Shown: positions 28,456 through 53,157, counted from the first letter of the whole stretch. The stretch: DNA of 63,777 bases, filler included, from Octopus bimaculoides (GCF_001194135.2; 5 parts of 4 records of this genome joined end to end with filler, not necessarily neighbours in it), one strand, 5' to 3'. Numbers and translations: made by a program. Notes: generated by a model from the letters alone, not told the origin.

Positions 28456-28729
28456 TAGGGAATAATGATATAGTTAAACAGGGAATAACACACTTGACAC
28501 CGAACGGCAGTAACTGTATACAGATGAATAGACGTCAGTGGCTGGTTGAAATTACAGAAATACGACAACTTTAACATGAAATAACTTGCGATGTACAATT
28601 TTTTGTTAAGAAGGTTAAGAGAAGAAGTTGTTTTATATGACACATTCTACCAGTGTCCCAAGTTTGAAATTGTTTCGTTAAGAAAACAAATGTTGCCCGT
28701 CAAACCCCAAAGATCCAAACACTGTAGTC

Positions 28730-29244
28730 GATGTAATTGACAAGTTCCCTCCCAAAAAATTTCAGGCCTTGTGCCGATAATAAAAAGGATTATTATTGTT
28801 ATTATTATTATTAAGGCGGCGAGCTGACAGAATTCGTTAGCAGGCTGGGCAAGCAGCATTTAGTCCGTCTTTACATTCTGAGTTCAAATTCTGCCGAGGT
28901 CGACTTCGCTTTTCATCTCTTAGAGGTCGATAAATTAAGTACCAGTCAAACACGGGAATAAATGTAATCGACTTACTCCTCCCCCAAAATTTCAGGCCTT
29001 GTGCCTATAGTAGAAAGGATTATTATTAGTATTATTATTAGGGTGGTGAGCTGGTAGACTCGTTAGTACACCGGGCAAAATGCTTCGTGACATTTCGCCC
29101 GTCATTAGGTTCTGAGTTCAAATTCCGCCGAGGTCGACTTTGTCTTTCATCCTTTCGGTGTTGGTAAAATAAGTACCGGTTGAACACTGGGATAGATGTA
29201 ATCGACTCATCCCCCACCCCCCAAAATGCTGCCCTTGTGGCAAA

Positions 29245-29270
<26 letters not shown>
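28730..29270 (+). mobile_element. Head-to-tail Nin/Deu SINE array (partial + 2 full copies) separated by (ATT)n
   Basis: Monomers at ~28730-28790, 28813-29020 and 29040-29245. Confidence 0.85.
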
Positions 29271-29277
<7 letters not shown>

Positions 29278-30158
29278 TAAGAAGTATAGTGGTATAGTAT
29301 TATCAGTGACTTCGAAGTTTCGTTCTGCTATCATCGATGACGGCGTAGCTGGCTGAAAATATGTACTCTACAATACGCATTGAGTAATCCCTTCAGCTTA
29401 ATGTAAAAGTGTTTTTATAACTTGATCCAACAACAATCATTAATATATATATATATNNNNNNNNNNNNNNNNNNNNNNNNNNNNNNNNNNNNNNNNNNNN
29501 NNNNNNNNNNNNNNNNNNNNNNNNNNNNNNNNNNNNNNNNNNNNNNNNNNNNNNNNNNNNNNNNNNNNNNNNNNNNNNNNNNNNNNNNNNNNNNNNNNNN
29601 NNNNNNNNNNNNNNNNNNNNNNNNNNNNNNNNNNCTATGTGTGCGTGCTAGAGCTATAAAAAAATCAGCTAAGTTTAGTTGTATTAAAACCGCCTTTGAA
29701 TGAAAATAACTCTTGAATTGTATGCCCTACAGCGACATCAGTTCTCTGTAAATATTTATATTTATTACTTATTTATTTATTTATTATTATTTATTGAATA
29801 TCTTCATTTACTTATTTCTCTCTCTTTTATTTATTTCTATGGATGAAGCAAACTTGTTTACGGCAAATTACCAACATTACCTTTTTGCAGTAAATAATCA
29901 CAGAAGAATAGAAAGAATCTTTATTTAATATGTAACAAACTGATGTGGTTGTTATAATGTGATCTACTATTATTATTTTTATTATTATTCATATTTTTGT
30001 GAATATGCTAATTTATTTATGCCTCCTCTAATACTAAATGGAAGTTTGTCAAGTGGGGATATGTTTACACCGGGCACCGCATGATGAATACAATATTTGA
30101 AAATTACGAACCGTACATACTTCTGAAAACTGTAAAAATTTTATTTCAGATTTAAATT

Positions 30159-30200
30159 ATGTCAGAAACTAACGGTTACCTTGTATTCCAACGAGGTCAG
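30159..30200 (+). CDS. SMN: SMN coding exon 1 ([14 protein letters not shown])
   Basis: ATG at 30159. LVFQRGQ resembles human VLFRRGTGQ. CAG|GTACTG donor in phase 0, joining DSDDSD. Confidence 0.8.
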
Positions 30201-33200
30201 GTACTGTAACAAACTGTGTATAGGCTTACTGTGCCAAATTTGAAACCAATGTTTTGTTTGTAAACCTCACATGCGATTCCTTAATCTGAATATTTGATAA
30301 CAGTTTTATTGAAGTTAAATTGTTTCTTTGACATGATTGTTTCCACACACTACTAAACTATGTTTCATTTATGTATCATCAGATCAGCTCCGTAACATAA
30401 TCAACGATCCCTCAACCCTTTATTAATATCATGTCAACTGAATTGTTATATTGTTCGTCGTAAAATATATTCATTCATTTTGGTTTTTGTTTTCTCACCA
30501 TATCCATAGAGAACAATTGAAATAGTTACATGGATAAAACACTGGAACAGCAACCAACTCATGTACCGTAAATTTAAACATTCTGTTGTGTTTTTGTGCT
30601 GCTAGCTAGTCGTGAGTGGTCGATCCTAACCCTAACCCTAACCCTATCCCTAACCCTATCCTTAACCCTAAACACGTATTCATTTGCACACGCTCACACG
30701 CGCACTTTTTGTAGGATCGACCACTCACGATAGGGTTAGGGTTAGGATCGACCACTCACGACTAGCTAGCGCGACTGCGCGTTCGGGACCATGCTGCTTT
30801 AGTAGTACCGAAAATGTTCTTGNNNNNNNNNNCACCAAAAAAAAAAAAAAAAAAAAGCTCTCCAGTACATGCTAGTCTAGAAAATCCGTTTGGTATTTCT
30901 TACGCAGTATCACCAGGCGATAAATTTGATACCAGTGGTGTATATCTGTGCACAGGAATTGTGGTCTTGGTGGGGTAAGCATCTACCAAAGTCTTGTTTA
31001 AGTGGCATAAGACTGCATGGTACTACATTCGGTTACTGCTATTGAGCTGAACAGCAGTTCATACTAAATGATATATTTTGGAGACATCATTATTCTAATA
31101 AAGGGCGAAGATTATCCAACTTCATTAATGTCATTGACAGAGACGTGCACAACTTGAAAGTGAGATCCAACCGAAGTTAATGGGGAACAAATGCTTGCAT
31201 TAGCTTTGGTAGGTCCTTGTGCCTGGCCTTAACTAGGGTGAAATACACCTCAGTTGCTTGAAAAAGTCATTTGTACTGGAATGCATCTGTCAGTTCCAAA
31301 ATGTGATATTTATATCTATAAATATTGCTTCCAAAAGACCTACCCTGACTCCCATGAACAGAGATTTCAAAAATATTCTACAATGGAATCACGCCTATCT
31401 TGTCTCTTTTAACAGGACAAAGTCACAATCATTACATATGACAAATATATTTATATGTGTTTGTATATATATATATATATATATGTATATAAATGTATGT
31501 AATTGTGTGTGTGTACATATGTATATATATATATTTTAATATTTTGCTTAGGCATACCGAGATGTATGTGTATTTACATATATCTATGTATGTGTGTATA
31601 TATATATATATGTGTGTATGTACATATGTGTATGTATATATGTGTATGTACATATGTGTATGTATATATGTGTGTGTATATATGTATATATATGTGTGCA
31701 TATGTACATATGTGTGTGTGTGTATATATATATAACGTGAGAGAGTTAGGGGTTGGGGGTTCAACCCACTAAGGGATAGTATCTATCCAGTATACTGATG
31801 GGAGGGTACCCAATTATTGCTATACTAGGTGCAATCAATGGGAGCGGGTAAAAGTGGAGGTTTTTACCCCAAATTTGTATAACAATTAGAAAATGAAGGA
31901 TAATATGCTGAACCTAACTACTTGCAGACGGTGTATCCCGTTGAATTCAAAAGTGACAAAAAAAGAAAGAAAAAGAAAGAAAGAACCAAAGCACAGGTGT
32001 CTATGGCAGACTATGTTATTTTGCCAACATGGTTTACATATAGAAGTACATAAGGAATTAGAGGATGAACAGAAGTTTAATCTTACAGCTGTTTCGGCCT
32101 AATTTTAGCAAGCCCCATTCTATCCGAATATTCCTTTCCGGAGTGATTATCGGATGACATTTTGAAATGGGGTTATATGCCCGNNNNNNNNNNNNNNNNN
32201 NNNNNNNNNNNNNNNNNNNNNNNNNNNNNNNNNNNNNNNNNNNNNNNNNNNNNNNNNNNNNNNNNNNNNNNNNNNNNNNNNNNNNNNNNNNNNNNNNNNN
32301 NNNNNNNNNNNNNNNNNNNNNNNNNNNNNNNNNNNNNNNNNNNNNNNNNNNNNNNNNNNNNNNNNNNNNNNNNNNNNNNNNNNNNNNNNNNNNNNNNNNN
32401 NNNNNNNNNNNNNNNNNNNNNNNNNNNNNNNNNNNNNNNNNNNNNNNNNNNNNNNNNNNNNNNNNNNNNNNNNNNNNNNNNNNNNNNNNNNNNNNNNNNN
32501 NNNNNNNNNNNNNNNNNNNNNNNNNNNNNNNNNNNNNNNNNNNNNNNNNNNNNNNNNNNNNNNNNNNNNNNNNNNNNNNNNNNNNNNNNNNNNNNNNNNN
32601 NNNNNNNNNNNNNNNNNNNNNNNNNNNNNNNNNNNNNNNNNNNNNNNNNNNNNNNNNNNNNNNNNNNNNNNNNNNGGATGTCCCCTTACTCCCATGTGTG
32701 CATATACAAGTTTTTATAAGCAAACATTCCACCACATACGTTGTTTGTGGCATCAGCTCTATTAGTCGTATCTAGAAAGCTGTAAGTGTTTTTTAGACAG
32801 GAAGTTTTGTTGAGTGTGTGTGTGTCATTTCTGTATATATTGGAAGGTTCTATGTAGAAGTTCATTTTATACAAGCTATTAATGTTCTAGTAGGAATAAC
32901 AGTGATGATGACAACAACAACAACAATAATATGCCAAACTTTCAAACTTAGCGGTGTAAGATATCCTGTTGCCTCTTCCATATATATATATATATATATA
33001 TATATGTTTAAGAGAAATGGAAAATGGAGACAAATGCACAAGATGTTACTTAAATCATTTATATCGCTGAAATATATGTTTCGATGGATACATTAATCCG
33101 GGAGGAAAAATAATGTGGAATAATGTATCAGTCTTATCAGGGAGGAGATTATCAATAACAATGTTCATTAATGAACCATTTTTACAGATGTAACAAATTA

Positions 33201-36200
33201 TAATGTACAGGGTGTCCCAGAAGTCACACACCATTCTGGTTTGTATTAGAAATAATTTTTTAATGATAATGTGACTGGTGAAACCTATTTAGAGCTCCTC
33301 TTTTACTCTTTTACTTGTTTCAGTCTTTTGACTGTGGCCATGCTGGAGCACCGCCTTTTAGTCGAGCAAATCGACCCCAGGACTTATTCTTTAGAAGCCT
33401 AGTACTTATTCTATCGAAAAATCTTTTGTCGAACCGCTAAGTTACGGGGACATAAACACACCAGCATCGGTTGTCAAGCGATGTTGGGGGGACAAACACA
33501 CACATACAAACATACACATACATATATATATATACATATATACGACGGGCTTCTTTCAGTTTCCGTCTACCAAATCCACTCACAAGGCTTTGGTCGGCCC
33601 GAGGCTATAGTAGAAGACACTTGCCCAAGATGCCGCGCAGTGGGACTGAACCCGGGACCATGTGGTTGGTAAGCTAGCTACTTACCACACAGCCACTCCT
33701 GCAAACTTTCTTGTTTGATTACCTTCAGGATCTTCCCATAATTCCCCATAACTTAGCGGTTCGGCAAAAGAGACCAATAGAATAAGTACTAGACATCCAA
33801 AGAATAAGTCTGGGGGCGATTTGCTCAACTAAAGGCAGTGCTCCAGCATGGCCACAGTCAAATGACTGAAACAAGTAAAAGAGTAAAAGTAGCTGTCTAT
33901 ATTGGAATAGTTTGTTCTCACTCTGTTATTTTGCATTCACAGGACTCAGATGATTCTGATATTTGGGATGATACAGCACTTATTAAAGCTTATGACAATG
34001 CAGTTGATAACATAAAGGTGTGTAAATTATATTTTCAGTTTCTTTTCTCATCACATTGCTGTTTTGCGTAATCATTGCAATATGCAGTGATTGACCATGT
34101 TGAGTAGAATATGACGTGTGTATATGTTCTTGAGTGGAGGCGCAATGGCCCAGTGGTTAAGGCAGCGGACTCGCGGTCATAGGATCGCGGTTTCGATTCC
34201 CACACCGGGCGTTGTGAGTGTTTATTGAGCGAAAACACCTAAAAGCTCCACGAGGCTCCGGCAGGGGATGGTCGCGAACCCTGCTGTACTCTTTCACCAC
34301 AACTTTCTCTCACTCTTACTTCTTGTTTCTGTTGTGCCTGTAATTCAAAGGGTCAGCTTTGTCACACTGAGTCACGCTGAATATCCCTGAGAAGTACGTT
34401 AAGGGTACACGTGTCTGTAGAGTGCTCAGCCACTTGCACGTTAATTTCACGAGCAGGCTGTTCCGTTGATCGGATCAACTGGAACCCTCGACGTCGTAAG
34501 CGACGGAGTACCAACAATATGTTCTTGTCTTGAGTTTATTGTTTGTGAATTTTTTGTTGTTTTTTTTTTCTGTATATTTATGAACATTCTGGTACTGATT
34601 TGATAGATAGTGATTTGTTGATTAAATTGATGTTTCAGGCACAACTTGATGATAAAATGGACTCTGAACAAAGCCCATCTAATGAGAAGGTAAATTGTCA
34701 ACAAAGTAGAAAAAGCAAAAAACAGACAAAGAAAAAAAATAAATGCAAGGTAAAAAATTTTTTAAATGATTGGTTTTCATCATTTGACTCAAGGCTGACA
34801 GAGTGTTTGTTTATTTTTGTCATTTATCTTTATTATTATCTTTCTCTGCTAGTATTGGTGAAATACTAGTAGAAACCATACCAAAACAAACATTTGAGCT
34901 CAGCACAGTCCAATAACTTGCCAGATCCTGTTGAACTGTCCAACTCATTTCAGCATAGAAAAAAAAATAGACATTAACTAATTATGGTGATGATATAAAC
35001 AAGATGGTTTTTTGGAAAATTCTAAAATTTGTATATTAACTATCTATACAGGTGCAGGCATGGCTGTGTGGTAAGAAGATAGCTTCCCAACCACATAGTT
35101 CCAGGTTCAGTCCCACTTCATGGCACCTTGGGCAAGTGTCATCTACTATAGCCTCAGGCCAACCAAAGCCTTGTGAGTAGATTTAGTAGAAGCCTGTTGT
35201 ATATCATTGCTATTATGCAAAAGTGTCATAAGTCCAAAACGTTGCTTTTTAAGAAAAAAAAAAATAGTTTCACAATTCCATTTCTTTTTACGTTAGCAGC
35301 AGTGTCAGCTTAACGATAATACTTTGTTGGGTGCATAAAATTGTAACTCTATGCATGTATGATATTTTCAGTCAGAAATGATTTTGTAAAACTGTCATAT
35401 GTTGGACTTGCTACACTTTTGAAAAATGCTCAGACTTACTACACTTTGACAATTTTCATATCTTGGCATCTGAAGCAGCTGGAGATACAATAGTTTGACC
35501 AAAAGAACCAGCTATTACAAGCAAAAATGAATATTGAACAAAATGCATTTGGCCAAATTTGGACATATGACAGTTTAACATAATAACAAGATATATATAT
35601 ATATATATANNNNNNNNNNNNNNNNNNNNNNNNNNNNNNNNNNNNNNNNNNNNNNNNNNNNNNNNNNNNNNNNNNNNNNNNNNNNNNNNNNNNNNNNNNN
35701 NNNNNNNNNNNNNNNNNNNNNNNNNNNNNNNNNNNNNNNNNNNNNNNNNNNNNNNNNNNNNNNNNNNNNNNNNNNNNNNNNNNNNNNNNNNNNNNNNNNN
35801 NNNNNNNNNNNNNNNNNNNNNNNNNNNNNNNNNNNNNNNNNNNNNNNNNNNNNNNNNNNNNNNNNNNNNNNNNNNNNNNNNNNNNNNNNNNNNNNNNNNN
35901 NNNNNNNNNNNNNNNNNNNNNNNNNNNNNNNNNNNNNNNNNNNNNNNNNNNNNNNNNNNNNNNNNNNNNNNNNNNNNNNNNNNNNNNNNNNNNNNNNNNN
36001 NNNNCAATCAACGGAACAGCCTGCTCGTGAAATTAACGTGCAAGTGGCTGAGCACTCCACAGACACGTGTGCCCTTAACGTAGTTCTCGGGGATGTTCAG
36101 CGTGACACAGTGTGACAAGGCTGACCCTTTGAATTACAGGCACAACAGAAACAGGAAGTAAGAGTGAGAGAAAGTTGTAGTGAAAGAGTACAGCAGGGTT

Positions 36201-39200
36201 CGCCACCATCCCCTGCCGGAGCCTCGTGGAGCTTTAGGTGTTTTCGCTCAATAAACACTCACAACGCCCGGTCTGGGAATCGAAACCGCGATCCTATGAC
36301 CGCGAGTCCGCTGCCTTAACCACTGGGCCATTGCGCCTCCACTAGGAAATAGTAAATCAACAAATTCAGGTTATTATTGATAGTTTATTTATCAATAAGA
36401 ATGTCCAAATATTCATCAAAAATTATCAGTCTCAAACTTTTTCTTACCATACATTGTTGAAATATACTGACTTTGTCTCAATTAATTTTGGAAATAATGG
36501 AGATTTAGGAAAATAACTTTGTTGTTAAAAATCGGATTTTGGAACATAAATCACCATGAAATTTTGATGAAAGGTTTTAATTTTGATCATTTTAAAGCAG
36601 GGAAAGCAAATTTCTTAATCACACACCAATGCCTTGTACCTATGTTGGAAATAATTATGAGTTGATGTTTAACATACGGACAGAGAGGCAGGCAGGTAGG
36701 CATGGTTTATCTAAGATTATGTTATCCAATGTTTTCTTCCATTTTTAAGATGGCAGACTGTGTTTTGAGTACAATTTTGACTGCTATTTCTAGTAGATTG
36801 AGCAGTCTCATAATGACCAAGATCAGTTTTGGCGTTCATTTTTTGTGGGGGTCATTAAAGTACCAGTCACATACTAAGGTTGACAGAATCAACTAAAAAA
36901 AATGTCAGGCTTTGTACCATTACTGGAAACAACTATAATTATATGAGTTAATGGTCTGAGAAATAGACAAGCAGAACATGTGTGCTATTTGTATTTTTGT
37001 TTTGCAAGAAATGATCGTGGTTGTATTACTTTCTCTTCTTACACCTAACACAAAACATGAGTTATGTATGTGCAACACAGTATAATGCAAGAAAGATGTA
37101 TGAAGTGCATGCATGTGCTATTAACACTCATGTTGAGGCATGCCTCAGTGTACATGTATATAAGTATGTATAATGCTGCAATTAATAATTCAGTTATTTT
37201 TTTGGTATGTTGTTGTCCTTCAGTGGAAAGTTGGAGATGAGTGCCTAGCTACCTACACAGAAGACTGTTTACTTTATGAAGCCAAAATAATATCAGTCAA
37301 CTATGAAGATGATACTTGTTTTGTCCGCTACTCTGGTTATGGCAATGAAGAACAGCAAAAGTTATGTGACCTGCTTTTACCTGATCCCAAATCTTTCACT
37401 TCAGATGTTCAGGTATATTTAATTTATTTATTCTAACATTCATTACTTAGAGTCCTGATTTTATTAACTTTTGTTTTTTCAAATTTGTCTGGATTACATC
37501 CTTAAAACAATAACAACTAAAAATCACTTATTATTTCGTGCCGGTGGCACGTAAAAGCACCCACTACACTCTCTGAGTGGTTGGCGTTAGGAAGGGCATC
37601 CAGCTGTATAAACTCTGCCAAATCAGATTGGAGCCTGGTGTAGCCATCTGGTTCACCAGTCCTCAGTCAAATCGTCCAACCCATGCTAGCATGGAAAGCG
37701 GACGTTAAACAATGATGATGATGATTGTGATGATTCTCATTCTTTACACAATTAGTGTATCTTATTGTGAGTTTTATCAATTAGTCAATTAGTTCTTATT
37801 GTTTAATCTGTTGTCATGGAATCCCTGTCACCTGATTCAGCAAACCTGTGATCAAAGGCAGCAGCCCAGGTTCGATTTTGTTTTAAGCTAATGTAAATCG
37901 ACAACTGCAATATCTAGTGTATCCTTCCCTTTTTTAAAGACAGTAAGTGGTGATTTTCACAGCACCAGCCCTGGAAACATCATCATGTTCCTGCTAAAAC
38001 AAGACTGAGGATTCTCTCAATTCTATAATTTCTCCATTCATTTCTCTACCACTTCACAAAATTTACTTGGTGCTACCATTCAAGAACAGAGGTTGATGAA
38101 ATCAACTAAAAAAATTTCAGGCCATGATGTACTTTAACATGTCATCACTACTTATGGAGTTGCCTGGCCCTAGGATCATTAAAGATACCCTGGCCCTCCG
38201 TTCATTAAAGATACCCTGACCATTAGTGGGAGAAGAAAAGGCAATTGCAAAGGATATATTAGGATGAGATGGAGAGTAGGGCATTTTCAGAAATAGTTTT
38301 AGAAGAGTAATTGTAGGTAACAGGAGTGTGTAAAGAGAATGATAGTAGAAGCAAAGGGAAATAGCAGCTGCCAATTCATAGGTAAAGGGGAGAGAGCTGT
38401 TGGTGGGTTGCTGTATGATCAGCAGTAAGAGAGCATATACAAGGGAGTTCTGAAAAGTTCCTGGCTTTAAGGGTATTTTGAAAAGCCTGGCTGGAGGCCC
38501 AACCTTCCAAGTTCTTTTACAGGGCTTAGAAATACTGAAGGGCCACTCCAATAAATGTATGAATCTGAGAGGGAAATATATTGGATAAAATCATAATTAA
38601 CTGATCCTCTTGTATTTTCTTTTACCCAAAACCAGGAACTTTTCAGCACCCCCGTGTACACTCAAACAGAATCCACAGAGACTGTTATTGGTCTGTGTCA
38701 GCCAGACTTGTATTATTTAGTAAAAGTGATAAAAGTAGTACAGTGAAGTTGCTGTGGGAAATGGAAAGTCAATCATCTTAGATAGAATCTTTCCTCTGGT
38801 AAAAATTAACAGGAATGAAATTAAAGAGAGACAGCAGCATCTTACATTCTCTAAGTTAGAAAAACTGGTTGTAAGTGATTAGGAATGCAGGACCAGGGGT
38901 GCTTCATATGTAGACAGAAAGTGGTAAGAGTGAGAAATTGGATGAGATAGGTAGGAGATAAAAGGTATGGAATTAGGAAGAGAAGAATGATGGATGACAG
39001 TAAGGAGTGATTATTTGCATCTATTTTAATTAGCATTCTTATGTGTTAAAATTTTAGGTGGATTCCAGCAAATTTTACCACAATGAACCAGCACAATCAC
39101 AGAAAAGTCACAAAAAGCGATCTGGTAAAAACAAATCAGCTAAAGGTAAAAATTGTGACAAAACCAGTTCAAATCCCTGGATGCCACCATTCTTAGGAAT

Positions 39201-42200
39201 GCCTAATGGTGCAGTAAGTATTTTTCTGTATCTTTATTTTCCCTTCATTTTGTACTAACTACTACTACCACCACCACTACTTACTATTATTGAGTGAGTG
39301 AGCTAAACATGCCATCAAAGTGACACTGGAGTACAACTATATGAAGCCCAATATACTCATCATTACTACCCAACTGATAAGGGTACACTCGTCACATGCA
39401 TCACAACCATATGTACATGACATGGTGATTGCATACCAAGATAAACAGCTCATAACTTTGCAGGTGGGGCCCAGTTAGAATTTCCTTCAGGTTGAGTAGC
39501 CCATTCCACTCAAACTGTCCCTGAATAAGGTTTGTTTAAGGATGGTGAACAAAACATCTATGTTGCCAGAGGTGAATTATTCAAACCCCAAAGAATTTCT
39601 CCCAACACATGGCTATGATGCTCCCCTCACTACTTCTGCTCATGATCAGAGATGCACATATCGTCAGCCATTAAGAGACATGTTCAACTGGTTATGTTCA
39701 AGCAACTGACAAGCCAATCTGTGGTATTGAGCAGAATATTTGCTGTAGCCCATCTTATACCATGACAAAACAATGTACATGATCACACATCTAATCATTT
39801 AAGATCAGAAACCATGAGAGTCACTGCCTGGCACTGCATTAGGACATTATGATTATTATCATTATTAGGAGACAAAATGGCAGAATCTTTAGAGTGTCAG
39901 AAAAAATGCTTTGTGGTATTTCCTCTGATGCTTTACATTCTAATGATTTCATTGTTGCCTTTCATCCTACTAGGGGTCAAAAGAATAAAGTACTGGGGTT
40001 GATGTAATCAACTAATCTCTCCCACTCAAAAATGCTGGCCTTGCACCTGAAATTGAAACCATTGTTATTATTATTATTATCACTTCATCCATCTTTACAT
40101 TCTAAGTTCAAATTCTGTCAAGGTTGACTTCGTCTTTCATTCTTTTGGGGTTGATTAAAAAAAAAGCACCAGTTGAGCACTGGGAATGATGTTATTAACT
40201 AGCACCCACTCCCCCAAAATTTCAGGCTTTGTGCCCTATAGTAGAAAGGATTATTATTATTATTTCATCCGTCTTCACATTCTGAGTTCAGATGCCACTC
40301 AGGTCGACCTTGCCTTTCATTTTTTCAAGATTGATGAAATAAGTACCAGTTTAACACTTAAGGTTGATGCAATTGAGTTTACCCTTCCCCCACAATTTCC
40401 GGCCTTGTGCCTTTAGTAGAAAGGTTTATTATTATTATTATTATTATTGTTGTTGTTGTTGTTGTGGTAGCAGCTGATAGAATTGGTCACATGCCAAACA
40501 AAATGCTTTTGTCCATCTTTACATTCTGAGTTTAAATTCCACCAAAGTCGACTTTGCTCTTCATCCTTCTCACATCAATGAAATTAAGTACCTATTGAAC
40601 AATGGCCAATGTAACTGACTTAAACCCCTCCCCAAAATTTCAAACCTTGTACCTATATCAGATAGGATAATTATTATTTCACACTGCAGTAGTGATTCTA
40701 TTGATTTTCTTCACAGAACATTAAACCACTACGCTTGTCTTCGGACCAAAGAGACATCCTCTCTGTAGTGTCACTGAAGTAATTACATTGATTGTAGAAA
40801 GTCATTTTGGTAATATTTTCAGGCACTCTACTTATTGACCATATTATAGCAGAAATAAACTATTACCTCTCTACATTTCCAAAATCTTAAATTCCCATTT
40901 TAGTTCCTGGTGTTTATCTTCTCATTTTCTTTTTTCTTTACCCTGTATAGCAAGTCTTCAAAGTTTTCATACAAACACCACTCAACAACATTTACAATAT
41001 TACTTAACAGAAAAAACAACAATAATTGTAGCAGCGACAACAATGATAAAAATAGGAAATGTCGTTGTTATCTCCCTTGCCAACATCACTGCTCTATTTA
41101 GAATACATTTAAAAATGATCACTTTATATACATAAACGATTTTTGTAATCATGACACAAAAAGTAAAAAAATTCTCCAATACAGCTCTTACGGATTAAGA
41201 AACACTTCAAAAATCTGAAAGATTTTACCGTCATTTATGACATTCGTGTGTTAATGATTTGGGAAACATTCTTACTATCAGAGCACACCACCATTCTAAA
41301 ATTCTACCCAGATCAGATTAAACAAACCTTTTCACAATGGAGTGCTTTTATAATATGCATAAAAACTTGCATTACATTTATAGATATTACAAATAGTATC
41401 CATAGACTTAGAAACAACATTATGCTAAGCATACAGGCTTTCAAAATGTAAGCCAGAAATAAAGGCTTTTGAAATAAAAATGCAAAATATTAATATAATG
41501 CACACACACACATACATTTCTGTGTGTGTGTGTGTGTGCATGCGTGTATTGAAGCAGTGAGCTGGCAAAATCGTTTTGCTTGGCAGCATTTTATCTGTCT
41601 TTACTTCTGAATTCAAATTCCACTAAGGTCGACTATGCCTTTCTTCCTTTCAGGATCAATAAAATGGTACCAGTTTAGCACTGGGGTCAATGTAATCAGC
41701 TTATTCCTTCTCCCAAAAATTTTGACCTTGTGCCAAAATTTGAATCTTGATGATGTTTTCTCGGAGTGGTTGGCGTTAGGAAGGGCATCCAGCTGTAGAA
41801 ACACTGCCAAATCAGATTGGAGCCTGGTGTAACCATCTGGTTCACCAGTACTCAGTTAAATCGTCCAACCCATGCTAGCATGGAAAGCAGACGTTAAACG
41901 ATGATGATGATGATGATGATGATGATGATATACACACACACACACATATACATATATGTATGTACATACCAGTCTGGCTACCACTGACATCAATAAAGCC
42001 TTCGACTACATTCCCATTTCTCTGTTAATAAAAAAAATACTTAACCCCACTTGAGCAATCAACACAAAAAGCACTGGTTAAACACCAAGTGTATGTCCTG
42101 TACAAATGCTGCCCTTCCAGAATCTCTAATTTCCTGAATGGAGTACAACAGTGACACATTCTCTGTTCTACTGCATGACATCTTGTGCTAGTGTCTCCCA

Positions 42201-45200
42201 CTATAGCCTTGAGCTGATCAATGCCTAACTTAGTGGATTGTCAAAAGAAACCAATAGAATAAGTGACAGACTTGAAAAAAATAAGTACTGAGGCTGATTT
42301 ATTTTATTAAAACCCATTGAGGCAGTACCCCAGCATGATTACAGTCCAATGACTGAAACTAGTAAAAGATAAAGATACAATTTTCCCACACTTCCATAAA
42401 ACCTATAAGCAGCTATTATTATTGTTGTTGTTGTTGTTGTTGTTAGCACTCCGTTGCTTACGATATCGAGGGTTCCAGTTGATCCGATCAACGGAACAGC
42501 CTGCTCGTGAAATTAACATGCAAGTGGCTGAGAACTCCACAGACATGTGTACCCTTAACGTAGTTCTCGGGGATATTCAGCGTAACAGTGTGACAAGGCT
42601 GACCCTTTGAATTACAGGCACAACAGAAACAGGAAGTAAGAGTGAGAGAAAGTTGTGGTACAGCAGGGTTCACCACCATCCCCTGCCAGAGCCTTGTGGA
42701 GCTTTAGGTGTTTTCGCTCAATAAACACTTACAACGCCCGGTCTGGGAATCGAAACCACGATCCTATGACCGTGAGTCCGCTGCCCTAACCACTGGGCCN
42801 NNNNNNNNNNNNNNNNNNNNNNNNNNNNNNNNNNNNNNNNNNNNNNNNNNNNNNNNNNNNNNNNNNNNNNNNNNNNNNNNNNNNNNNNNNNNNNNNNNNN
42901 NNNNNNNNNNNNNNNNNNNNNNNNNNNNNNNNNNNNNNNNNNNNNNNNNNNNNNNNNNNNNNNNNNNNNNNNNNNNNNNNNNNTATTTGTTTTCATCAAT
43001 TTCTTAAGTCGAAAAGGACATAACTCAAATTGACATATGTTGAAGTATGCCTGTGTATGTAAATCAAAGAGATCGCACATCATTTCTAAGTGAGACTTTA
43101 CCACTTCAGTCAGAGAATAACGAATTCATTGTAAGATTAATACGAAAATTATTTATTTAATAGAAAATACATCAAAACATCGCTTCATACAGCCTTATGT
43201 CCTCATTTACCTTTGCCAAACGATATATTGATAGATTGGTATTTTCACTTGGTACTAATTGCCTTTGGGTAATGTTTCTTGTTTTTATGTAGTCTTTTTT
43301 TTTTTTTTTTGCATTCTTCAAATTAATGTCCATACTTTGTGGAGATTCCTTATAGTCCAATCCACAATCATAAGACAACGTTGGACTCTGGTTTCTTTGT
43401 TTCAAAGAAAACAAGTTATACAAGGGATATAACTCTTTATATTACTCTGCATAATTTGCCTTGAATTGGAAAATAGCAAATTTCTTTTTTTGTTGTTGCT
43501 TTTTGTTTTGTATATGATTTCATAGCATCGAATTTGCCAACTGATATAATCTTTCTTCTTGGAGATGACAATATTCTTGGCTAAATAAACCAAGTAAGTT
43601 TAGTGAAGCTTTGTTTAAACTCACTTTGAAATCACTATTCTTACATTGTCAGTGACTTTGAAGTTTCAACTTGCTTTTCAGAACCCTTTTGCTGGAATGT
43701 ATGCACCACCTTGGGCAGGAATGCCTTCTCCACACAGACACATGGTAAGTTATTTCAGTTTGTACTATATGTTGCCTATAACTAATTCAGTTTACTGGGA
43801 ATAGTTGCAGATATTGTTGTATTCTAAGAGCTGAAACTCGTGAAATTTAAAATGGAAGCTCTGACATTCATATCTTCTTACCAGAGAGTGCAACCTGCAA
43901 GGTAATATCACAAGTACTGGTAGCACAAAAACAAACACCTAGTAAATGCTATAAAGTGGTTGGCATTAGCAAAGACATCCAGCCATAGAAACCCTACAAA
44001 AGGAGACACTGGTGCACAATGCAGTCTTCAGACTCATCAGATCCTGTTAAACCATACAACTCATGCCAACATGGAGCATGGATGTTAAATGTCATTGTTA
44101 TTGATGATGGAGGATGGTGGTGATGATGATGAAATTGGTAGTATGGTACTTTTGTCACATTTCAATGTGGCAATCATTCTGAGTCCCTGGTTATCTTAAC
44201 TCAAAAGTTTGTTTCATAGACAAATGTGAACACTTTGACGAATAGATTATGTGCCCAAAAGCTGGAAAAAAAGGGAGAGGGGGCGACCAAAAGAAGAATG
44301 AAATGGGGAGTATTAGAATTCAAAAGGAGGGCCATTACAAAAGTTAGGTGAATGAAGGTTCAGAAACACTGGTTCTCTGAACAAAATCTATTGTAATAGG
44401 AGATGGTAAGTCACAAATAGAAGAAACTATTATTGCTAAATAGAACGTATTTCTTATCTTGAACAGAGGGCCTTGTTACCTCATTGAAGCCTATTGATGT
44501 AACCCCATGGCAAAAGTTTGGGGAAGTAAAACAAGTAGTCACACATAGCCCCTTACTTTTGTTGGCCTTAATAACCAAAATAATCACATAAAGCTGCAGT
44601 TGCATGTTAAATAGCTTTCATCTCATAACCATCAGGTTTGGATCACATTACATTGTCATGCAAAATGCATGTAACACTACAATAATAAAACGATGACACC
44701 ACAAGGGTCAGACAGAATTTACTGAAGCAGATTTTCTACAACTGGATGTTGTTCCTGTCACCAACACTCATTCGTTTCTAAACAAGATATTTCGCAAGGT
44801 TAGGCATACTTCCTATGGAAGACTGGAAGTGAACAATATTGTTTGTATGATGCTGATACCTATTTACAACCACCACATGAAGCCAAGACACACAGAGCCT
44901 TCCTTCAGTTTCTGTCCACCAAATCCTGTCACAGGTTTTGGGTAGAGTAGAAGACACTTCCCCAAAGTACCTCACATTGGGACTGAACCCAAAACCACAT
45001 AGCTAGGAAACTTCTCAACCACACCTTTACCAACTTCATGATTATAGAACTTGTGATAGAAACTTCTCTGACAAAATTAACCTACTCACTGCTAACATTG
45101 AATAATTGATGTAACAAAACAACATTCCGCAATTTTTTTCTTTTCGTCTACACCAACTTGATAATATTTTCAAGTTAATGGGATTCTTTTTGTTTTTGTT

Positions 45201-48200
45201 TTTTTCCAGAACTTGCCAAATATTCCTCCACCACCTCCTCCAATGGCCAGCTGGGACATGGATAATAATGAAGCTCTCTGTAGTATGTTAATGTCATGGT
45301 ATATGAGTGGTTATCACACAGGATACTATCAGGTAACAGTTTCTGTTATTGTTTTTTTTTAATATAAATATGTAATTTTTCTATTGTTATTTGGGATATT
45401 TACAGTGTTTTTTGGTTTTTGTTTTTTTAACACTGGAACAAAAAAGCAAAACGTTTTTGAAGATTTCCTTACAGCCAACCATTGCCTCTGTTTTGTCTGG
45501 CAGTTAAATTACTTCCCTGACAAATCAGCGATCTGTTTTAATGATGTTGCGGTTGTTTAGCCACATTCTAATTAAAACAAAGTTTCTAAATATGATACCT
45601 GCTAATTGTTGTTTTTGTTTAGTGTCTGGTCAGCCTAGCAGACCAATTATCAAAGCATTCCAACCATGACCATTCCCTTTTATTTTTCAGACAGTCTATA
45701 TATTCATGACTACATATTACGTAGTGTGTCTTTCCTGCTTAACTTTTTTTAAGACAGTAAGATATGGTATGAAGGGAGATTTGGCTGCTATTTTTAGCAG
45801 GTCATTGGCTTGACATCTGCAAATTGCTATATTCTGTTAAAATCTACTGTTTGCTTCATCTATTATTATTATTATTTAATATTATATTCTTAACATTTCA
45901 GTTTTTGTTTTTTGGTGGATTTTTTTTCTCTCAACAACACCAGTTTTTGTCAGAGCTGAAGAAAATTTTTCAATAAGAACCAACTTAGAACTATGTTTCA
46001 GAAATGCTCCAACCATTCCTAAAATGCATAATTTTTCTTCTTCAAACAGTCAACCATCAGGAGCTAAATTCCTGGTGAGCTGCATCCAAGACTGAGTATT
46101 AACAACTCCTGGCTGTAGTAATTTCGTTTCACTTCACTTGCATAGTTTAGTGCCGTTAAGGCTTATTTGTCATGTATTCTCATTCCATATTCTTCACTTA
46201 AGAATCTTTGTGTGTTTATAATAACTTGACATCATTTAATCTTATTCCAAGGTGGTGAGTGGCAGAATTGTTAACTTGCTGGATAAAATGGTTAGCAGCA
46301 TTTCTTCCAGTTGTTTATGTTCTGAGTTCACATCCCACCAAGGTCAAACTGTGCCCTTCATCCTTTTGGGGTTTATAAAATAAAGTACCAGTCAAGTACT
46401 GGGGTCGGTGCAATTGACTTGTCCCCTACTCTCAAATTTGCTGACCTTTCACCCTGCAACAGACGAATGTCCCATTCAGAGGGAATGTTGTGATCTTGGT
46501 CAGTTATTTGTCATGGAAACCAAGTAACCAGCTTATGAATTCTCAATACGAAAATCTTACATCACCCCAACTCCTATAAACCTACTTTTTTGTCTGTATC
46601 TAATGCAAGAAATTAATACTTTTCCCCACTGAACCTTCGGTTTGCAAGACATCAGTTACATAGGGCCATTGTGTGGACACTGATACATCTAAAGATGTTA
46701 TATTAACATTTGAGAACCTTTGTTACGTCGTTTATTATCTTGTAGTAATTGTTAAAGTTTCATCATTCATGTGCAAATGTTAGCATTTGTTAAATAATCT
46801 CTCCATACGCTATTGTTGAAAATGAATGAAAGGTAGATTTTTACATGGCTGTGTGGTAAGAAGTTTGCTTCCCAACCCTATGGTTTCAGGTTCAGTCCCA
46901 CTGTGTAGCACCTTGGTCAAGTTTCTTCTTTTGCCCCAGACCAACCAAAGCCTTTGGAGTGGGTTTCATAGAGGGAAACTGAAAGAAACTCATCATGTGC
47001 ATGTATATATATATATTGCCGGACTGGCCCTCGTGCCGGTGGCACATGAAAAGCACCCACTACACTCTTGGAGTGGTTGGCGTTAGGAAGGGCATCCAGC
47101 TGTAGAAACTCTGCCAGATCAAATTGGAGTCTGGTGTAGCCATCTGGTTTGCCAGTCTCCAGTCAAATCGTCCAACCCATGCTAGCATGGAAAACGGACG
47201 TTAAATGATGATGATGATGATGATGATAGAAGGCAAAGGTAGTGGGGGTAGGGATGCCTACGACAATATTATACTGAACCAAATGCTTTATTGTAACTAG
47301 TTTGGTGCTTTAACCATTTTCAGGTTCAAATCCTGCTAAATCTGCTTCGCTTTTTTATTGGTCTTAATAAAATTAAGTATCAGCAATATGCTTTAATTAA
47401 TAACTTTCACACTAGCATTTAAACTGGCCAGATCTGGCCTCATCAAAATCTCAAAGATACGAGATAATGCATGAACAATTCAAAACAGTATGAATAAATA
47501 AGCATTGCATTTGATAGAATACTAAAGGGTTAAGGTGATGTTGTTGGCCAAGACTGTAACATGTTGGATTAGGATAAAATAGCTTGTATTTGTTCTGGTT
47601 CTCTGTAATCAGTTGAAATACCAGTCTAATACTGGGGTTGATTCTTTTCATTTTTCTCTCACTCTCATTCCCTTTGGAAGGACTCAGCTGTATTCAGCCT
47701 AAGACAAGTATTTCATGATGGTACTCCTACAATATCTATTTCTGGTAGGACGTTGACCACTTTTATTTTTACCACACTTCAGCTAAGATAGATCAGTATG
47801 ACAACCAGTTTCTCACTCTTTTGAGTATTACAGAATGCTTCCTGGCTTTTTTTTTTCTCATCTCTGTCATGTGAAACCTTCTCCCTCAAGCAATTTGGCT
47901 TTTAGTGCCCCAGCTTAGTTTAAGACACTTCTCAATTTTGGTTAAGTACCTGCCACCATCACCAACTCTCATATTACAATACCACTATGCTTCAGGTATG
48001 AGTACTAACTGACATTAGCAGCCATTTTACTAGTGGATGTAAAAGTAAAAATATGTTAACATAAGAAAACAAATTATATTTAAGTCAAGGGATAATCAAT
48101 GTCACTAGGGATTGAGGTGATCCTAATATATCAGAATAGATTAAACATCTTTTAAAAATTGTAAAAAAGCACAGACAATAACAACAGCACATACACACTG

Positions 48201-50488
48201 ATACTGAAAAAAAAAAAAGAGGGCATGGAAACAATTATATGAGTGGTTGTTGAATGAGAATTTGTATAGGAAGAGGAATTAATACAGGGGGATCCAACAG
48301 ACAGACTAGTTATTGAGGTTGACAGCTATATGGTAAAATGAGATGATAAGGATATGAAGTTAAGGAAAGCAACCTGACATATGCAATAGTTGCTTAGGTG
48401 CCAAAAAAAATCTGCAAAATAGATTGGGTATGAGCTGGTTATTTACATCGTCCATCAGAAGTGGTGGGGGATCTCAGGATGCTCACATAAAAAGATGGCA
48501 AAGGACCACAAATGCACAAATGCTGTGTGGAAATTAACTCATCTAACTTATGCTAGCATATTAAAGTGGATGTGAAAATCATGGTAATAATGGTAAAGAT
48601 ATTTAAATTTTCATTTTTTTAAAAATGAATGTAAACTCTTTGACACTGACAATGATCAAAATATAGTGAAATGTTTCCAACAAATTTTATTGATTTTTTT
48701 GTTTTTTGTTTGCTTTTGGACTACTTTCAGCACTTACAACAAAGAGTTGTCACTTTTGCAGTGTAGGATAGGGGTCAGTGAAGGAAGGACAATGTTCATA
48801 CCCTTTCTAAACTGGTGAAAGCAATAAGGATTGAGTTTGCACTTTTGTAAGGGAAATGCAAGTGGGAGTGATACTTCAGTGTTTAGATTAAAGTTCCATT
48901 TGTGATAAGTGTTTCTTTTTATTGCCTATAGCATCAATCAAATAAGCACAAGCAGTGTACAGGGTATGTGTGATACAGTTGTTTGTAACTTTACAGAAAG
49001 GTTATTGGTACCTGAGAAAGGGGAAATAATGCAGATTAGACTATTTGACATAATGACCATCAATTTAATGATCACTTTTTCATGCTCTCCTAGGTTGGCT
49101 GCAGTAGCATAGCCGGGTTCTAAAGTTAGGAGTGAGCACATAAATAAAAGGTGCTATGAGACATACCAAACAATTTTTCACACATTTCTTTAATATTACA
49201 CAAAATATTTCATTATTTATATGTAATTGTATTCTCCATTCATCCAGTGATGAGAGGTTATGACATCAGTAGACAGTTCAAAAACATGAGAGGTTGGTCA
49301 AATCAAGTAATGACCCAGAAATTTCTTCCAAGGCCTTGCAATTAACAAAAAAAAAAAGATTCAGCTTCTATTGTTCAAGTGAACTAAGTTTTAAAAATTG
49401 TTGAAAAGGCACCACCACTGGTCAAATGGAATTTGTTGACGCAGATATTTTACAGCTTGATGCCTTTCCTATCACCAACCCTTCCTTGTTTCTAAGATAG
49501 GTAATATTTCTTCATGGCCAGGCACAAGAATGGAAGCAAACAACATGGGTTATATGATGATGCTCATTTACAGCCATCACAATAGTTTTATTTACTTACG
49601 TTAGTTTAGTTTCTACTTTTTCTTTTAATTGGAAGATTACATACATCTCTATTCATGTTACAGGCATTTATTACAAATCCTTTTGCGTGAAAGGCTGAGG
49701 CTATCTCAATGGAATATGAAAATGAAACTGAATTACTATGAATCATAAATTGTTGCATTGTTTAAATTCTAAGAAATGCGAACTTGCTCACAGAGAAAGG
49801 TGCAAGTAGTAGGTTAGTAAAATAGTTCAAGCAAGAATTGAAACCTCATTGTTAATGCTGCATTAAACTACCTCACAGGTGTGACACAGTTTGGATCATA
49901 ATCTTGAATGTCACTACACTGAATATTTAAAAATAAAATATAAGGATAGCTAAGTAAAATTGCTGTCTTCCACACATACAGACTTGTCCTTTCAGGCACT
50001 GGTGTCACATAAAGGGCACCTGTTCTGGTGCTGCATAAACACATCTATACTGGTGCTGCATAAACACATCTATACTGGTGCTGTGTAAATGCACCTGTGC
50101 TGGTGGCACATAAAAAGCACCTAGCATACTCTGTTAAGTGGTCAGCGTTAGGAAGGGCATCTATCCATAGAAACCATGTCACAACAGACAGCTGGTCTGG
50201 ACAGCTCCCAGTTGGCCTGCTCCATGTCAAATCATCAAACTCATGCCAGCATAGAAAGCAAATAACGATGATGATGACGATGGGTGATAGACTGTATTTG
50301 TAACAACAGCAGACACCTTTTATATTGAATAAGCTTCAACCAGAAAATAAAAGTAATTTTTATTCTTGAAGCACAAATTTATTTTAAATTCTAAAAAATT
50401 GTTATTTAAAAGAATATTGTTTTATCTTTATTTACATATCTATGTATTTGTTTTCTATCTTCAGGGCTTAAAGAGTAAACAAAATTAA
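30159..50488 (+). CDS. SMN: Survival motor neuron protein, 8 coding exons: join(30159-30200,33943-34017,34639-34749,37224-37412,39058-39213,43682-43744,45210-45332,50465-50488); 783 nt = 260 aa + TAA
   Basis: Manual splicing gives an uninterrupted ORF: [44 protein letters not shown]...[18 protein letters not shown]...GYGNEEQ...DVQ/VDSSK...MPNGA/NPFAG...[15 protein letters not shown]...[24 protein letters not shown]. It contains the SMN signatures [16 protein letters not shown], Tudor domain and YG box. All junctions are GT-AG, phase 0. Confidence 0.95.
30601..30810. mobile_element. Telomeric-repeat-bearing foldback element in SMN intron 1
   Basis: 30601-30640 is the exact reverse complement of 30731-30770 (40 bp, includes 3 TTAGGG-type units). 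Extra direct copy taggatcgaccactcacga at 30712-30730. Terminal motif gggacc..tttagtagtacc at 30785-30809 is shared with the 61707 element. Confidence 0.8.
33299..33703 (-). mobile_element. Young full-length composite tRNA-headed SINE with internal (CA/TA)n
   Basis: Minus strand reads tgcaggagtggctgtgtggtaag..gggttcagtcccactgcg...gaaagaagcccgtc-(TA/TG)n-...gactgaaacaagtaaaagagtaaaa; CpGs intact. Confidence 0.88.
33743..33890 (+). mobile_element. Tail half of the same composite SINE, inverted relative to 33299-33450
   Basis: tccccataacttagcggttcggcaaaag...gactgaaacaagtaaaagagtaaaa. Confidence 0.85.
33943..34017 (+). CDS. SMN: SMN exon 2a equivalent (Gemin2-binding motif)
   Basis: ttgcattcacag| acceptor; [25 protein letters not shown]; AAG|GTGTGT donor; 75 nt. 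Confidence 0.97.
34133..34517 (+). mobile_element. Young tRNA-headed SINE with (CAA)n tail (possibly octopus tRNA-Arg-related OR-type), in SMN intron 2a
   Basis: A-box tggcccagtgg, B-box ggtttcgattcc, 3' caacaa; near-identical copies at 36005 and 42422. Confidence 0.88.
34639..34749 (+). CDS. SMN: SMN exon 2b equivalent (Lys-rich)
   Basis: tgtttcag| acceptor; [37 protein letters not shown]; AAG|GTAAAA donor; 111 nt; basic stretch directly before the Tudor exon as in human. Confidence 0.85.
35050..35200 (+). mobile_element. Head fragment of composite SINE (SMN intron 2b)
   Basis: gtgcaggcatggctgtgtggtaagaag...ggttcagtcccac...accaaagccttgtgag. Confidence 0.8.
36005..36343 (-). mobile_element. 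(CAA)n-tailed tRNA SINE, inverted copy (SMN intron 2b)
   Basis: I count ~13 differences from 34133-34473 over ~340 nt (~96%); tail lost in gap. Confidence 0.9.
37224..37412 (+). CDS. SMN: SMN exon 3 equivalent (Tudor domain)
   Basis: gtccttcag| acceptor; [53 protein letters not shown]; CAG|GTATAT donor; 189 nt; aromatic-cage Y/Y/Y/Y/N and E134-equivalent present. Confidence 0.97.
37537..37725 (+). mobile_element. (GAT)n-tailed RTE-type 3'-end element. Further + copies at 41755-41928, 47030-47226, 53790-54071, 59837-60167; - copies at 55981-56232, 62664-62847; diverged copies at ~43925-44130, 50090-50280, 51045-51225
   Basis: Recurrent gtgccggtggcacgtaaaagcacccactacactctc...ggaagggcatccagctgtag...gcatggaaagcggacgttaaa(c/t)gatgatgat. 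Short tandem-repeat tails are typical of RTE clade elements (inference). Confidence 0.8.
38440..38656. mobile_element. 217-bp mariner-type MITE with TA TSD
   Basis: TA|caagggagttctgaaaagttcctgg ... ccaggaacttttcagcacccccgtg|TA. Confidence 0.8.
39058..39213 (+). CDS. SMN: SMN exon 4 equivalent
   Basis: attttag| acceptor; [52 protein letters not shown]; GCA|GTAAGT donor; 156 nt. Confidence 0.85.
39880..40670 (+). mobile_element. Head-to-tail array of four diverged Nin/Deu SINEs (SMN intron 4)
   Basis: Four cctttcatcc/aagtaccag/caaaatt..ggccttgtg units separated by (ATT)n. Confidence 0.8.
41553..41745 (+). mobile_element. Nin/Deu SINE copy, directly followed by a (GAT)n-tailed element
   Basis: gaagcagtgagctggcaaaatcg...aggtcgactatgcctttc...ccttgtgccaaaatttgaa. 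Confidence 0.8.
42422..42799 (-). mobile_element. (CAA)n-tailed tRNA SINE, inverted copy (SMN intron 4)
   Basis: (TTG)n tail at 42422-42444, body complementary to 34133-34517, head runs into gap; several CpG transitions. Confidence 0.88.
43682..43744 (+). CDS. SMN: SMN exon 5 equivalent (Pro-rich)
   Basis: ttgcttttcag| acceptor; [21 protein letters not shown]; ATG|GTAAGT donor; 63 nt. Confidence 0.85.
44880..45030 (-). mobile_element. Diverged composite-SINE head fragment (SMN intron 5); a + head fragment lies at 46845-47010 (intron 6)
   Basis: cttcagtttctgtccaccaaatcc...gtagaagacacttcccc...gggactgaaccc. Confidence 0.7.
45210..45332 (+). CDS. SMN: SMN exon 6 equivalent (poly-Pro + YG box)
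   Basis: Long T-tract-ccag| acceptor; [41 protein letters not shown]; CAG|GTAACA donor; 123 nt. Confidence 0.97.
46248..46445 (+). mobile_element. Nin/Deu SINE copy (SMN intron 6)
   Basis: aaggtggtgagtggcagaattgtt...cccttcatccttttgggg...aagtaccagtc. Confidence 0.75.
47401..47533. mobile_element. TTAA-ended piggyBac-like MITE remnant; related tandem ~180-bp units at 60790-61130
   Basis: ...gaataaataagcattgcatttgatagaatactaaagggTTAA recurs as aataaataagcattacatttgatagaataatctcaatgccaaagggTTAA at ~60967-61018. Confidence 0.5.
48235..48450 (+). mobile_element. Heavily decayed RTE LINE ORF fragment
   Basis: YE.LLN.EN ... MK.RKA ... IGYELV pattern upstream of the RT domain, with many stops. Confidence 0.35.
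50465..50488 (+). CDS. SMN: SMN terminal coding exon (GLKSKQN*), exon 7 equivalent
   Basis: Long pyrimidine tract ...ttttctatcttcag|GGC TTA AAG supplies the last Gly of YxxGYxxGYxxG; TAA at 50486-50488. Confidence 0.8.
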   Translation, partial: GLKSKQN

Positions 50489-52260: not shown

Positions 52261-53157
52261 ATTATTTAGATTATCATATTAGAAATATGTCTTGTGGTAT
52301 ATTTGTTCAGATTGTTTATTTTTCTGAATTCAAATCCCAGCAAAAGAGATCACAATAGAATCATTTAAATAATTGGATGGGTTTTCATTGTATAAGTTCA
52401 ATTGGAACAAAATTTATTAATATTTAAGACATTTATAAATATTTTTAAGGAAATATATATTTAAATACTTTAATTATTTATTACCAAAAAATAAATTCAA
52501 TTTGTAAATATGTTTATTAAGATATAAGCCAATTCAATGTTAAAAAAAAGGAAGAAAAAATACAATTGCATTCAGTGTTGTTCAATATCCAAATAATTCA
52601 TTTGTCACTTTTTGATTGTCGCAATTTGTAATGTGCATCTGAAAGTGAGCGGAGTTTTTCTGCAGCCTTTCAAAGAGAAAAAGTATTAAGAATATGATGA
52701 GTATAAATGACTTCTTTTTCTTTTTTTCACAGATCTAGATGCTGAGAGAATTACAAAAGCAAATACATATATATATGGATGCAGGCATGGTTAGGTACAG
52801 CTGTGTGGTTGAGATGTTTGCTTCCCAGCTACATGGTCTCAGGTTCAGACCCACAGCATGGGGCAAGCCTTGTGAGTAGTTATGGTAAACTGAAAAAAGC
52901 TTTGTCATCTCTTTTTCTATGTGAATATATATAGATATATTGTAAGGGTCTTTCAGCTCTTGTTTCTAGCAATGTAGGTGCTACCCTGCATCCTCAGTTG
53001 CAGCTAGTGACAATTAAATTTTTCCTTTTTGGTTTTATGTAGTGTATAGCCACAGTCATTATTATATATATATATATATATATATATATTACAAAGTTTG
53101 TATGTATGTGTGTGCATATGTTCCTTATGCATTTGTAAACTTAGTTGCTGACTTTAA

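Follow-up and report, generated by a model that had tools for sequence, protein, structure and literature searches.

Lineage-specific inverted SINE insertions around SMN exons in Octopus bimaculoides: probable intronic double-stranded RNA rather than an evolved circular RNA system

The human SMN1/2 genes, from which Alu-associated circular RNAs (circRNAs) have been described (Ottesen et al. 2019, PMC6451121; Pagliarini et al. 2020, PMC6954450; Luo et al. 2022, PMC9323214), provide the closest parallel to the locus considered here; abundant human circles comprise exons 2B-3-4, 3-4 and 2A-2B-3-4 (C2B-3-4, C3-4 and C2A-2B-3-4; PMC6451121). Mouse Smn makes mC2A-2B-3-4, but not C2B-3-4 or C3-4 (PMC6451121; PMC9323214). 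Since the mouse gene has no Alu elements, and its introns 2A and 2B no short interspersed nuclear elements (SINEs), SMN circles do not depend strictly on repeats. The present work concerns the SMN gene of Octopus bimaculoides, as represented in a window of 63,777 nucleotides (nt), i.e. the whole stretch of DNA that was analysed (GCF_001194135.2, five parts of four records joined with filler), which maps to CM046602.1 of GCA_001194135.2 near 69.49 Mb (locus L001; window coordinate = L001 + 19699). Three copies of a young SINE, here termed family A, lie in its introns, one on the plus strand upstream of exon 2b (A1) and two on the minus strand downstream (A2 and A3). The reading that we favour, and consider probable, is that these are neutral young insertions which form ADAR-edited intronic double-stranded RNA (dsRNA) and lead to minor back-splicing at most.

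The likeness to human SMN1/2 extends to the gene itself and its exon architecture, to lineage-specific SINEs that occupy introns 2a and 2b and have an inverted partner further downstream, and to the early-exon circles that can be drawn, which are in frame and stop-free. By contrast with the human genes, where SINE density is high throughout, octopus SMN has only three family-A copies, and these are unrelated to Alu. The octopus insertions are, moreover, found in one Octopus lineage only, and the octopus circle is a prediction from sequence, whereas the human circles are experimentally verified.

Back-splicing promoted by intronic complementarity, with rival pairs competing and ADAR and DHX9 as antagonists (reviewed in PMC5042038; Ivanov et al. 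2015, cited in PMC9699675), is the more general parallel, in that inverted repeats in octopus SMN flank exons with canonical splice sites and offer several alternative partners. The octopus gene differs in showing the sequence precondition alone, in that the nearer of its pairs surrounds just one, very short exon, and in belonging to a host with unusually high ADAR activity and few circRNAs. Complementary sequences are known to compete with one another, pairing that is very stable can hinder circle formation, and circles of one exon are as a rule made from long exons (PMC5042038). In total RNA from O. vulgaris tissues circRNA levels were low overall, with 296 high-confidence circRNAs, 200 of them in a single tissue; the authors attributed the low levels to ADAR and saw in back-splicing no departure from other invertebrates (PMC9699675).

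The hyper-edited dsRNA of O. bimaculoides itself (Porath et al. 2017, PMC5625713) is a third comparison, the likeness being a long near-perfect intramolecular duplex formed by nearby inverted young repeats in a transcribed intron. That study, which invokes such substrates to account for the very high hyper-editing of the species, reported for it the strongest hyper-editing signal among those compared and an exceptionally high fraction of long near-perfect dsRNA loci (4.4e-3); editing at A1, A2 and A3 would be the expectation from these species-wide data. Octopus repeat landscapes are dominated by SINEs (PMC9068888). Given this abundance and the dsRNA fraction, inverted young intronic repeats are common in O. 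bimaculoides, most of them evidently without detectable circles.

The assignment of the gene as SMN, along with the exon numbering, sizes and phases given in a preliminary description of this DNA, was confirmed: in a protein search the concatenated exons 2a-2b-3-4 are 100% identical to XP_014773931.1, survival motor neuron protein isoform X1 of O. bimaculoides, with Pfam matches to SMN_G2-BD and SMN_Tudor, and the coding exons have AG/GT boundaries throughout. All are on the plus strand, and exons 2a to 6 are phase 0. Exon 2a (33943-34017, 75 nt; 100% to XP_014773931.1 by tblastn) encodes the Gemin2-binding region matched by SMN_G2-BD; it is followed by exon 2b (34639-34749, 111 nt), exon 3 (37224-37412, 189 nt), which carries the Tudor domain (SMN_Tudor), exon 4 (39058-39213, 156 nt), exon 5 (43682-43744, 63 nt), exon 6 (45210-45332, 123 nt) and, from coding-exon mapping, the last coding exon (50465-50488). 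Alternative first coding exons at 29700-29747, 30159-30200 and 30530-30562 give isoforms X1-X3, whilst X4 starts at the in-frame ATG of exon 2b (34657) and so is without the Gemin2-binding region.

A1 (34133-34516, plus strand, intron 2a) is full length and ends 122 nt before the exon 2b acceptor; A2 (36005-36343, minus strand, intron 2b) is cut at its 3' end by an assembly gap, with ~47 nt missing; and A3 (42417-42799, minus strand, intron 4) has lost its first ~14 nt in another. In a three-way alignment they form a non-coding unit of ~385 nt, dispersed in three different introns, with 91-96.5% pairwise identity, a CpG-rich body and a 5' head in which motifs resembling the RNA polymerase III A box (TGGCCCAGTGG) and B box (GGTTTCGATTCC) are visible. 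The 3' end is an (AAC)n tail, long in A3, where it is (AAC)7(AAT)n and appears on the plus strand as (GTT)n at 42417-42444, and vestigial in A1, which ends CAACA. ARAGORN and Rfam gave no tRNA match either in the whole piece or with the family-A head alone, for which the Rfam threshold was relaxed to E<=10, and a tRNA origin of the head is thus not confirmed. A1, the only copy with both ends assembled, has a perfect 11-bp duplication, ATATGTTCTTG, on either side, at 34122-34132 (plus strand) and again at 34517-34527; since the far ends of A2 and A3 lie within gaps, target-site duplications are readable for A1 only. The same 11-mer is single-copy in O. sinensis and O. vulgaris, with its flanks uninterrupted, i.e. 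the empty site for A1. Family A behaves as a SINE, because its copies are short and dispersed, there is a target-site duplication with an empty site, and the tail is (AAC)n.

The three elements are also separate copies that have aged independently, rather than assembly duplicates, because each has its own private substitutions: over 315 shared columns these number 7 in A1 (2.2%), 4 in A2 (1.3%) and 11 in A3 (3.5%), with 7 of the 11 in A3 being of the CpG-decay type. A diverged fragment of family-A type (78%, 3' half only) was observed upstream of SMN in both O. sinensis (L002 3787-3954) and O. vulgaris (L003 1318-1485); an older relative of the family, or else its tail, derived from a long interspersed nuclear element, therefore predates the species split.

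Comparison was made with the orthologous, gap-free loci of O. sinensis (L002), O. vulgaris (L003) and Argonauta hians (L004). When the loci are aligned, neither O. sinensis nor O. vulgaris has A1, A2 or A3 in the corresponding introns, intron 2a being 621 nt in O. bimaculoides versus about 224 nt in the other two, and the 5' end of A2 abuts orthologous intron sequence exactly. The surrounding introns of O. bimaculoides and O. sinensis are 91-94% identical; A1, A2 and A3 are younger than the split from O. sinensis, since their private substitutions (1.3-3.5%) fall below this 6-9% intron divergence. The proposal that the insertions were acquired independently in this lineage therefore holds, with the 11-bp duplication and clean empty site of A1 in addition to the absence from the sister species.

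The same comparison places the family-A copies within a wider gain of repeats. Between exon 2a and position 47222 there are at least 8 O. bimaculoides-specific insertion blocks, totalling ~4.4 kb, which are A1, A2 and A3, two copies of a further repeat, family C (37536-37718 and 41756-41931), and the blocks at 37872-38379, 40449-41018 and 45373-47222. When inverted pairs of at least 60 nt that bracket SMN exons were counted in the four octopod loci, O. bimaculoides had 5, O. sinensis 1, O. vulgaris 1 and Argonauta hians 12; those in Argonauta hians involve unrelated repeats, reach 83% over 249 nt and in some cases bracket exons 2b-3-4 and 3-4. From these counts, such brackets come and go with repeat turnover and the arrangement is not conserved. 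Neither the family-A copies nor an inverted copy of a second SINE family (family B) is present at orthologous positions in O. sinensis or O. vulgaris, as would be looked for in a conserved or functional SMN regulatory element. The further suggestion that the octopus has evolved a dedicated system is thus at odds with the comparative data, the insertions being young, restricted to one lineage and part of an influx of at least eight, with other octopods having no such pairs or unrelated ones; these data point to ordinary lineage-specific repeat insertion.

The two main inverted pairs described previously are present. A1 (34133-34470) is complementary to A2 (36007-36343) at 96.5% over 338 nt (blastn E = 2e-159) and, through 34147-34517, to A3 (42440-42799) at 90.8% over 371 nt, the former pair enclosing exon 2b and the latter exons 2b-3-4. 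This complementarity is a matter of common descent from one repeat family, not chance. The predicted A1:A2 duplex has 331 base pairs (-687 kcal/mol), with its arms about 1.5 kb apart in the same pre-mRNA, and the predicted A1:A3 duplex has 346 base pairs (-671 kcal/mol), with its arms 7.9 kb apart; the distance between A3 and the exon 4 donor is 3.2 kb. The inverted arrangement is not special as such, because with three randomly oriented copies one or more inverted pairs would be expected in 75% of cases. That either exon 2b or exons 2b-3-4 could be looped out is borne out insofar as both are bracketed, but the earlier emphasis on 2b-3-4 is less well placed, since the nearest and strongest partner, A2, brackets the 111-nt exon 2b only and competes.

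The pairs assigned to family B fare unevenly. The minus-strand copy in intron 1 (33522-33703) is inverted relative to the plus-strand copy in intron 2b (35040-35200), and the resulting pair (33566-33703 with 35053-35190) is real, at 88% over 138 nt. The other two pairs are weak: 35081-35153 with 44940-45012 matches at 71% over 73 nt, and 44949-45024 with 46844-46972 is based on a 74% match over 80 nt. The copy at 35040-35200 is old and shared, being 96% identical to its orthologs at L002 17768-17928 and in L003. O. sinensis and O. vulgaris have a single plus-strand family-B copy at another position, so the pairing with 33522-33703 is specific to O. bimaculoides.

Two assembly gaps lie close to the elements, and it has to be considered whether the minus-strand copies could be an artefact of them, i.e. 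a collapsed or misplaced repeat at contig ends. Gap 1 (35610-36004, intron 2b) conceals the 3' end of A2 together with about 367 nt of intron; gap 2 (42800-42983, intron 4), which the preliminary description did not mention, abuts A3. A2 begins right at a gap edge (36005) and A3 stops right at one (42799), and both gaps persist in the sole O. bimaculoides assembly found for the locus, as would suit such an artefact. Against it, A2 and A3 each run directly into unique intron sequence on a contig that also carries exon 3 or exon 4, respectively, and because of this their orientation is independent of the gaps; the SINE boundary is, to the base, the point where the O. sinensis and O. vulgaris alignment resumes or stops; and every copy is marked by substitutions of its own, with CpG decay among those of A3. 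The flanks of gap 1 align with L002 up to 18330 on the left (to 35600) and from 18698 on the right of the SINE (from 36343), on the same strand, in order and at 93-94% identity, with O. vulgaris behaving likewise. Its estimated size (395 nt) fits the about 415 nt expected (367 nt of intron plus the ~47 nt SINE remainder), and the equivalent 367 nt of O. sinensis is plain intron, in which no exon and no family-A sequence was found. The flanks of gap 2 are colinear with L002 23338 and 23763, with 424 nt between them in O. sinensis. The concern raised earlier, that a SINE copy might be misoriented across 35610-36004, is therefore allayed by the contiguity of each copy with unique intron; the flanks of both gaps are colinear with two gap-free loci, both gaps are intronic, so the reading frame is unaffected, and both are benign. 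On the evidence of the junctions and private substitutions, an artefact was rejected and is regarded as very improbable.

The locus thus shows three independent, recent retrotranspositions of one ~385-nt SINE into introns 2a (plus strand), 2b (minus strand) and 4 (minus strand). They postdate the divergence from the O. vulgaris/O. sinensis lineage and belong to a wider influx of repeats into SMN that is specific to this lineage. What follows for the transcript is inferred: in the pre-mRNA, A1 could pair with either minus-strand copy to give a near-perfect duplex of ~330-350 bp. A1:A2 would form in preference to A1:A3, because its arms are closer (1.5 kb versus 7.9 kb), more complementary and transcribed first; it would enclose exon 2b alone, a poor substrate for a single-exon circle, and, by withholding A1 from A3, would disfavour the 2b-3-4 circle. 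The duplex would probably be hyper-edited by ADAR and discarded with the introns, leaving linear SMN splicing intact, with any back-splicing a low-level by-product.

Several observations weigh against this neutral reading, to the extent that appreciable back-splicing at SMN may occur. The duplexes, at 338-371 nt and 91-96%, far exceed the 30-40 nt that suffices in minigenes (PMC5042038), and the arrangement resembles that of human SMN in having a SINE in intron 2a and in intron 2b as well as a partner further downstream. Human C2B-3-4 and C3-4 have been attributed to the SINEs in introns 2A and 2B, with mouse having neither those SINEs nor those circles (PMC6451121; PMC9323214). The family is also locally dense, in that a stretch of 8.7 kb contains three young copies whereas the remaining ~32 kb of the locus has none. 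In addition, the deeper sequence of A2 and A3 lies at contig ends, where repeat collapse could affect the exact identity values.

It may accordingly be asked whether the inverted SINE pairs drive detectable, species-specific circSMN (2b and/or 2b-3-4), as human Alu pairs do, with ADAR lowering the yield and the product being either a by-product or functional. The analogy with human circSMN, which had been quoted accurately (PMC6451121), is reasonable as a prediction, because human and mouse differ in SINEs and circles together, i.e. C2B-3-4 and C3-4 track the presence of SINEs in introns 2A and 2B (PMC6451121; PMC9323214). Inverted repeats with good splice sites sufficed in SMN minigenes (PMC9323214), and octopus SMN has both strong complementary sequences in the flanking introns and canonical sites, with AG before 34639 and GT after 34749 and 39213. 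Set against this are the competition of A1:A2 with A1:A3, the atypical shortness of a 111-nt single-exon circle, the 3.2 kb that separates A3 from the exon 4 donor, and the limited circRNA repertoire of the O. vulgaris tissues profiled (296 high-confidence circRNAs, at low levels), for which ADAR was blamed (PMC9699675). The examined supplements of that study, which may omit its circRNA table, do not mention SMN. A query of a protein collection with exons 2a-4 returned no 4-to-2b junction; the matches were all annotated linear isoforms of SMN, from O. bimaculoides, O. sinensis, O. vulgaris and Argonauta. This negative is weak and largely uninformative, since the collection contains no octopus transcript-assembly proteins. 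Overall, circularisation at a detectable level seems unlikely. A different consequence of the same pairing would be that A1:A2, in looping out exon 2b, mainly alters linear splicing by causing 2b to be skipped, as might be expected of a duplex that brackets one short exon and has an arm just 122 nt from the acceptor. Exons 2b-3-4 are, however, kept in all annotated O. bimaculoides isoforms; X1-X4 differ in their first exons only, and the annotation of O. sinensis, whose SMN introns have no family-A SINEs, lists the same types of isoform. Skipping, being unsupported by any annotated isoform, was rejected and appears very unlikely.

The most elaborate proposal is that circSMN (2b-3-4) undergoes rolling-circle translation from the exon 2b ATG into concatemeric Tudor peptides, as an adaptive, SINE/ADAR-tuned system. 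The underlying arithmetic is sound. Predicted circle sizes are 111 nt for exon 2b and 456 nt for 2b-3-4, with the latter including the whole Tudor exon (exon 3), and none of the circles tested contains a stop in frame 0; the in-frame ATG of exon 2b is at offset 18, its context being AAAATGG. The predicted back-splice junction, 39213 to 34639, reads AATGGTGCA joined to GCACAACTTG, and the predicted junction peptide is GMPNGAAQLDDK; the junction sequences agree with those previously given. Stop-free circles follow, however, from the symmetric phase-0 exons of SMN, the sizes of which (75/111/189/156/63/123 nt) are identical in three Octopus species. Human SMN has internal exons of 72, 120, 201 and 153 nt, which sum to 546 nt. 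The human C2A-2B-3-4 circle is, correspondingly, 546 nt long, a multiple of 3 (PMC11076517). An endless open reading frame (ORF) is thus what the exon structure gives automatically, and not something that the octopus has gained. A check of PMC11076517, on human SMN circRNA, for the terms ORF and IRES (internal ribosome entry site) found mention of neither, and insertions that are species-specific, very young and without conservation leave little time for a tuned system to arise. For an acquired SINE/ADAR-tuned circRNA system that makes Tudor concatemers, the sequence would supply preconditions, and no support beyond these. We consider a species-specific circSMN 2b-3-4 that encodes the Tudor domain in an endless ORF, is gated by ADAR through the ~340-bp intronic duplex and is translated to be highly improbable, and an adaptive system making concatemeric Tudor peptides to be scarcely credible.

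As it stands, the locus is one instance of two documented features of the genome, young intronic SINEs and abundant long dsRNA from inverted copies, and it would bear on SMN biology or open questions only once RNA evidence is to hand. The useful new facts are that the insertions are absent from the sister species O. vulgaris and O. sinensis, which makes these two available as natural controls, and that the two gaps are benign. Were circSMN to be found, the locus would constitute a clean natural experiment, with a strong inverted SINE pair in the SMN gene of one species, absent from two close relatives, in an extreme-ADAR host, and would permit a direct test of the contributions of a single young repeat pair and of ADAR to back-splicing.

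Some further features of the repeats in and around the gene may be recorded. The insertions are asymmetric: when 33943-47222 of the window is compared with L002 17068-26187, the O. sinensis/O. vulgaris lineage has almost no gains (one ~54-nt difference). The O. bimaculoides-specific block of 1.85 kb (45373-47222), which begins only 40 nt past the exon 6 donor, is composite, with a part resembling another repeat, family D, a family-B portion (46844-46972), a family-C portion (47018-47226) and ~850 nt unmatched in the other loci. The 508-nt O. bimaculoides-specific block in intron 3 (37872-38379) has no similarity elsewhere in the four loci. Family D units (~180-230 nt) form head-to-tail clusters at 28716-29275, 40002-40676 and 51433-52282, all on the plus strand, and occur in all three Octopus species; within SMN, all five family-C copies are likewise on the plus strand, and the sole minus-strand copy (55982-56188) lies beyond the gene. 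This strand pattern may reflect an orientation bias or array-like repeats. In intron 1, a 75-nt inverted repeat (88%; 33284-33358 with 33831-33905) flanks the minus-strand family-B copy; its arms belong to another repeat family, which is also found in O. sinensis introns, and the whole may be a composite element or one bearing terminal inverted repeats.

Two other candidates were dismissed. An apparent repeat family, D1 (132 copies at 8-nt spacing), is an artefact that coincides with runs of N at 29457-29634 and 32184-32675, and the microRNA-like Rfam matches (mir-297, mir-3149, mir-466 and others) at 31430-31740 and 54100-54620 are false positives, falling below gathering scores in (TG)n/(TA)n microsatellite. 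Downstream of SMN, on the minus strand, is a gene for galactose-1-phosphate uridylyltransferase, with GalP_UDP_transf domains (about 52598-56232; L001 32899-40789); it lies tail-to-tail with SMN, a conserved synteny that O. sinensis, O. vulgaris and Argonauta hians share.

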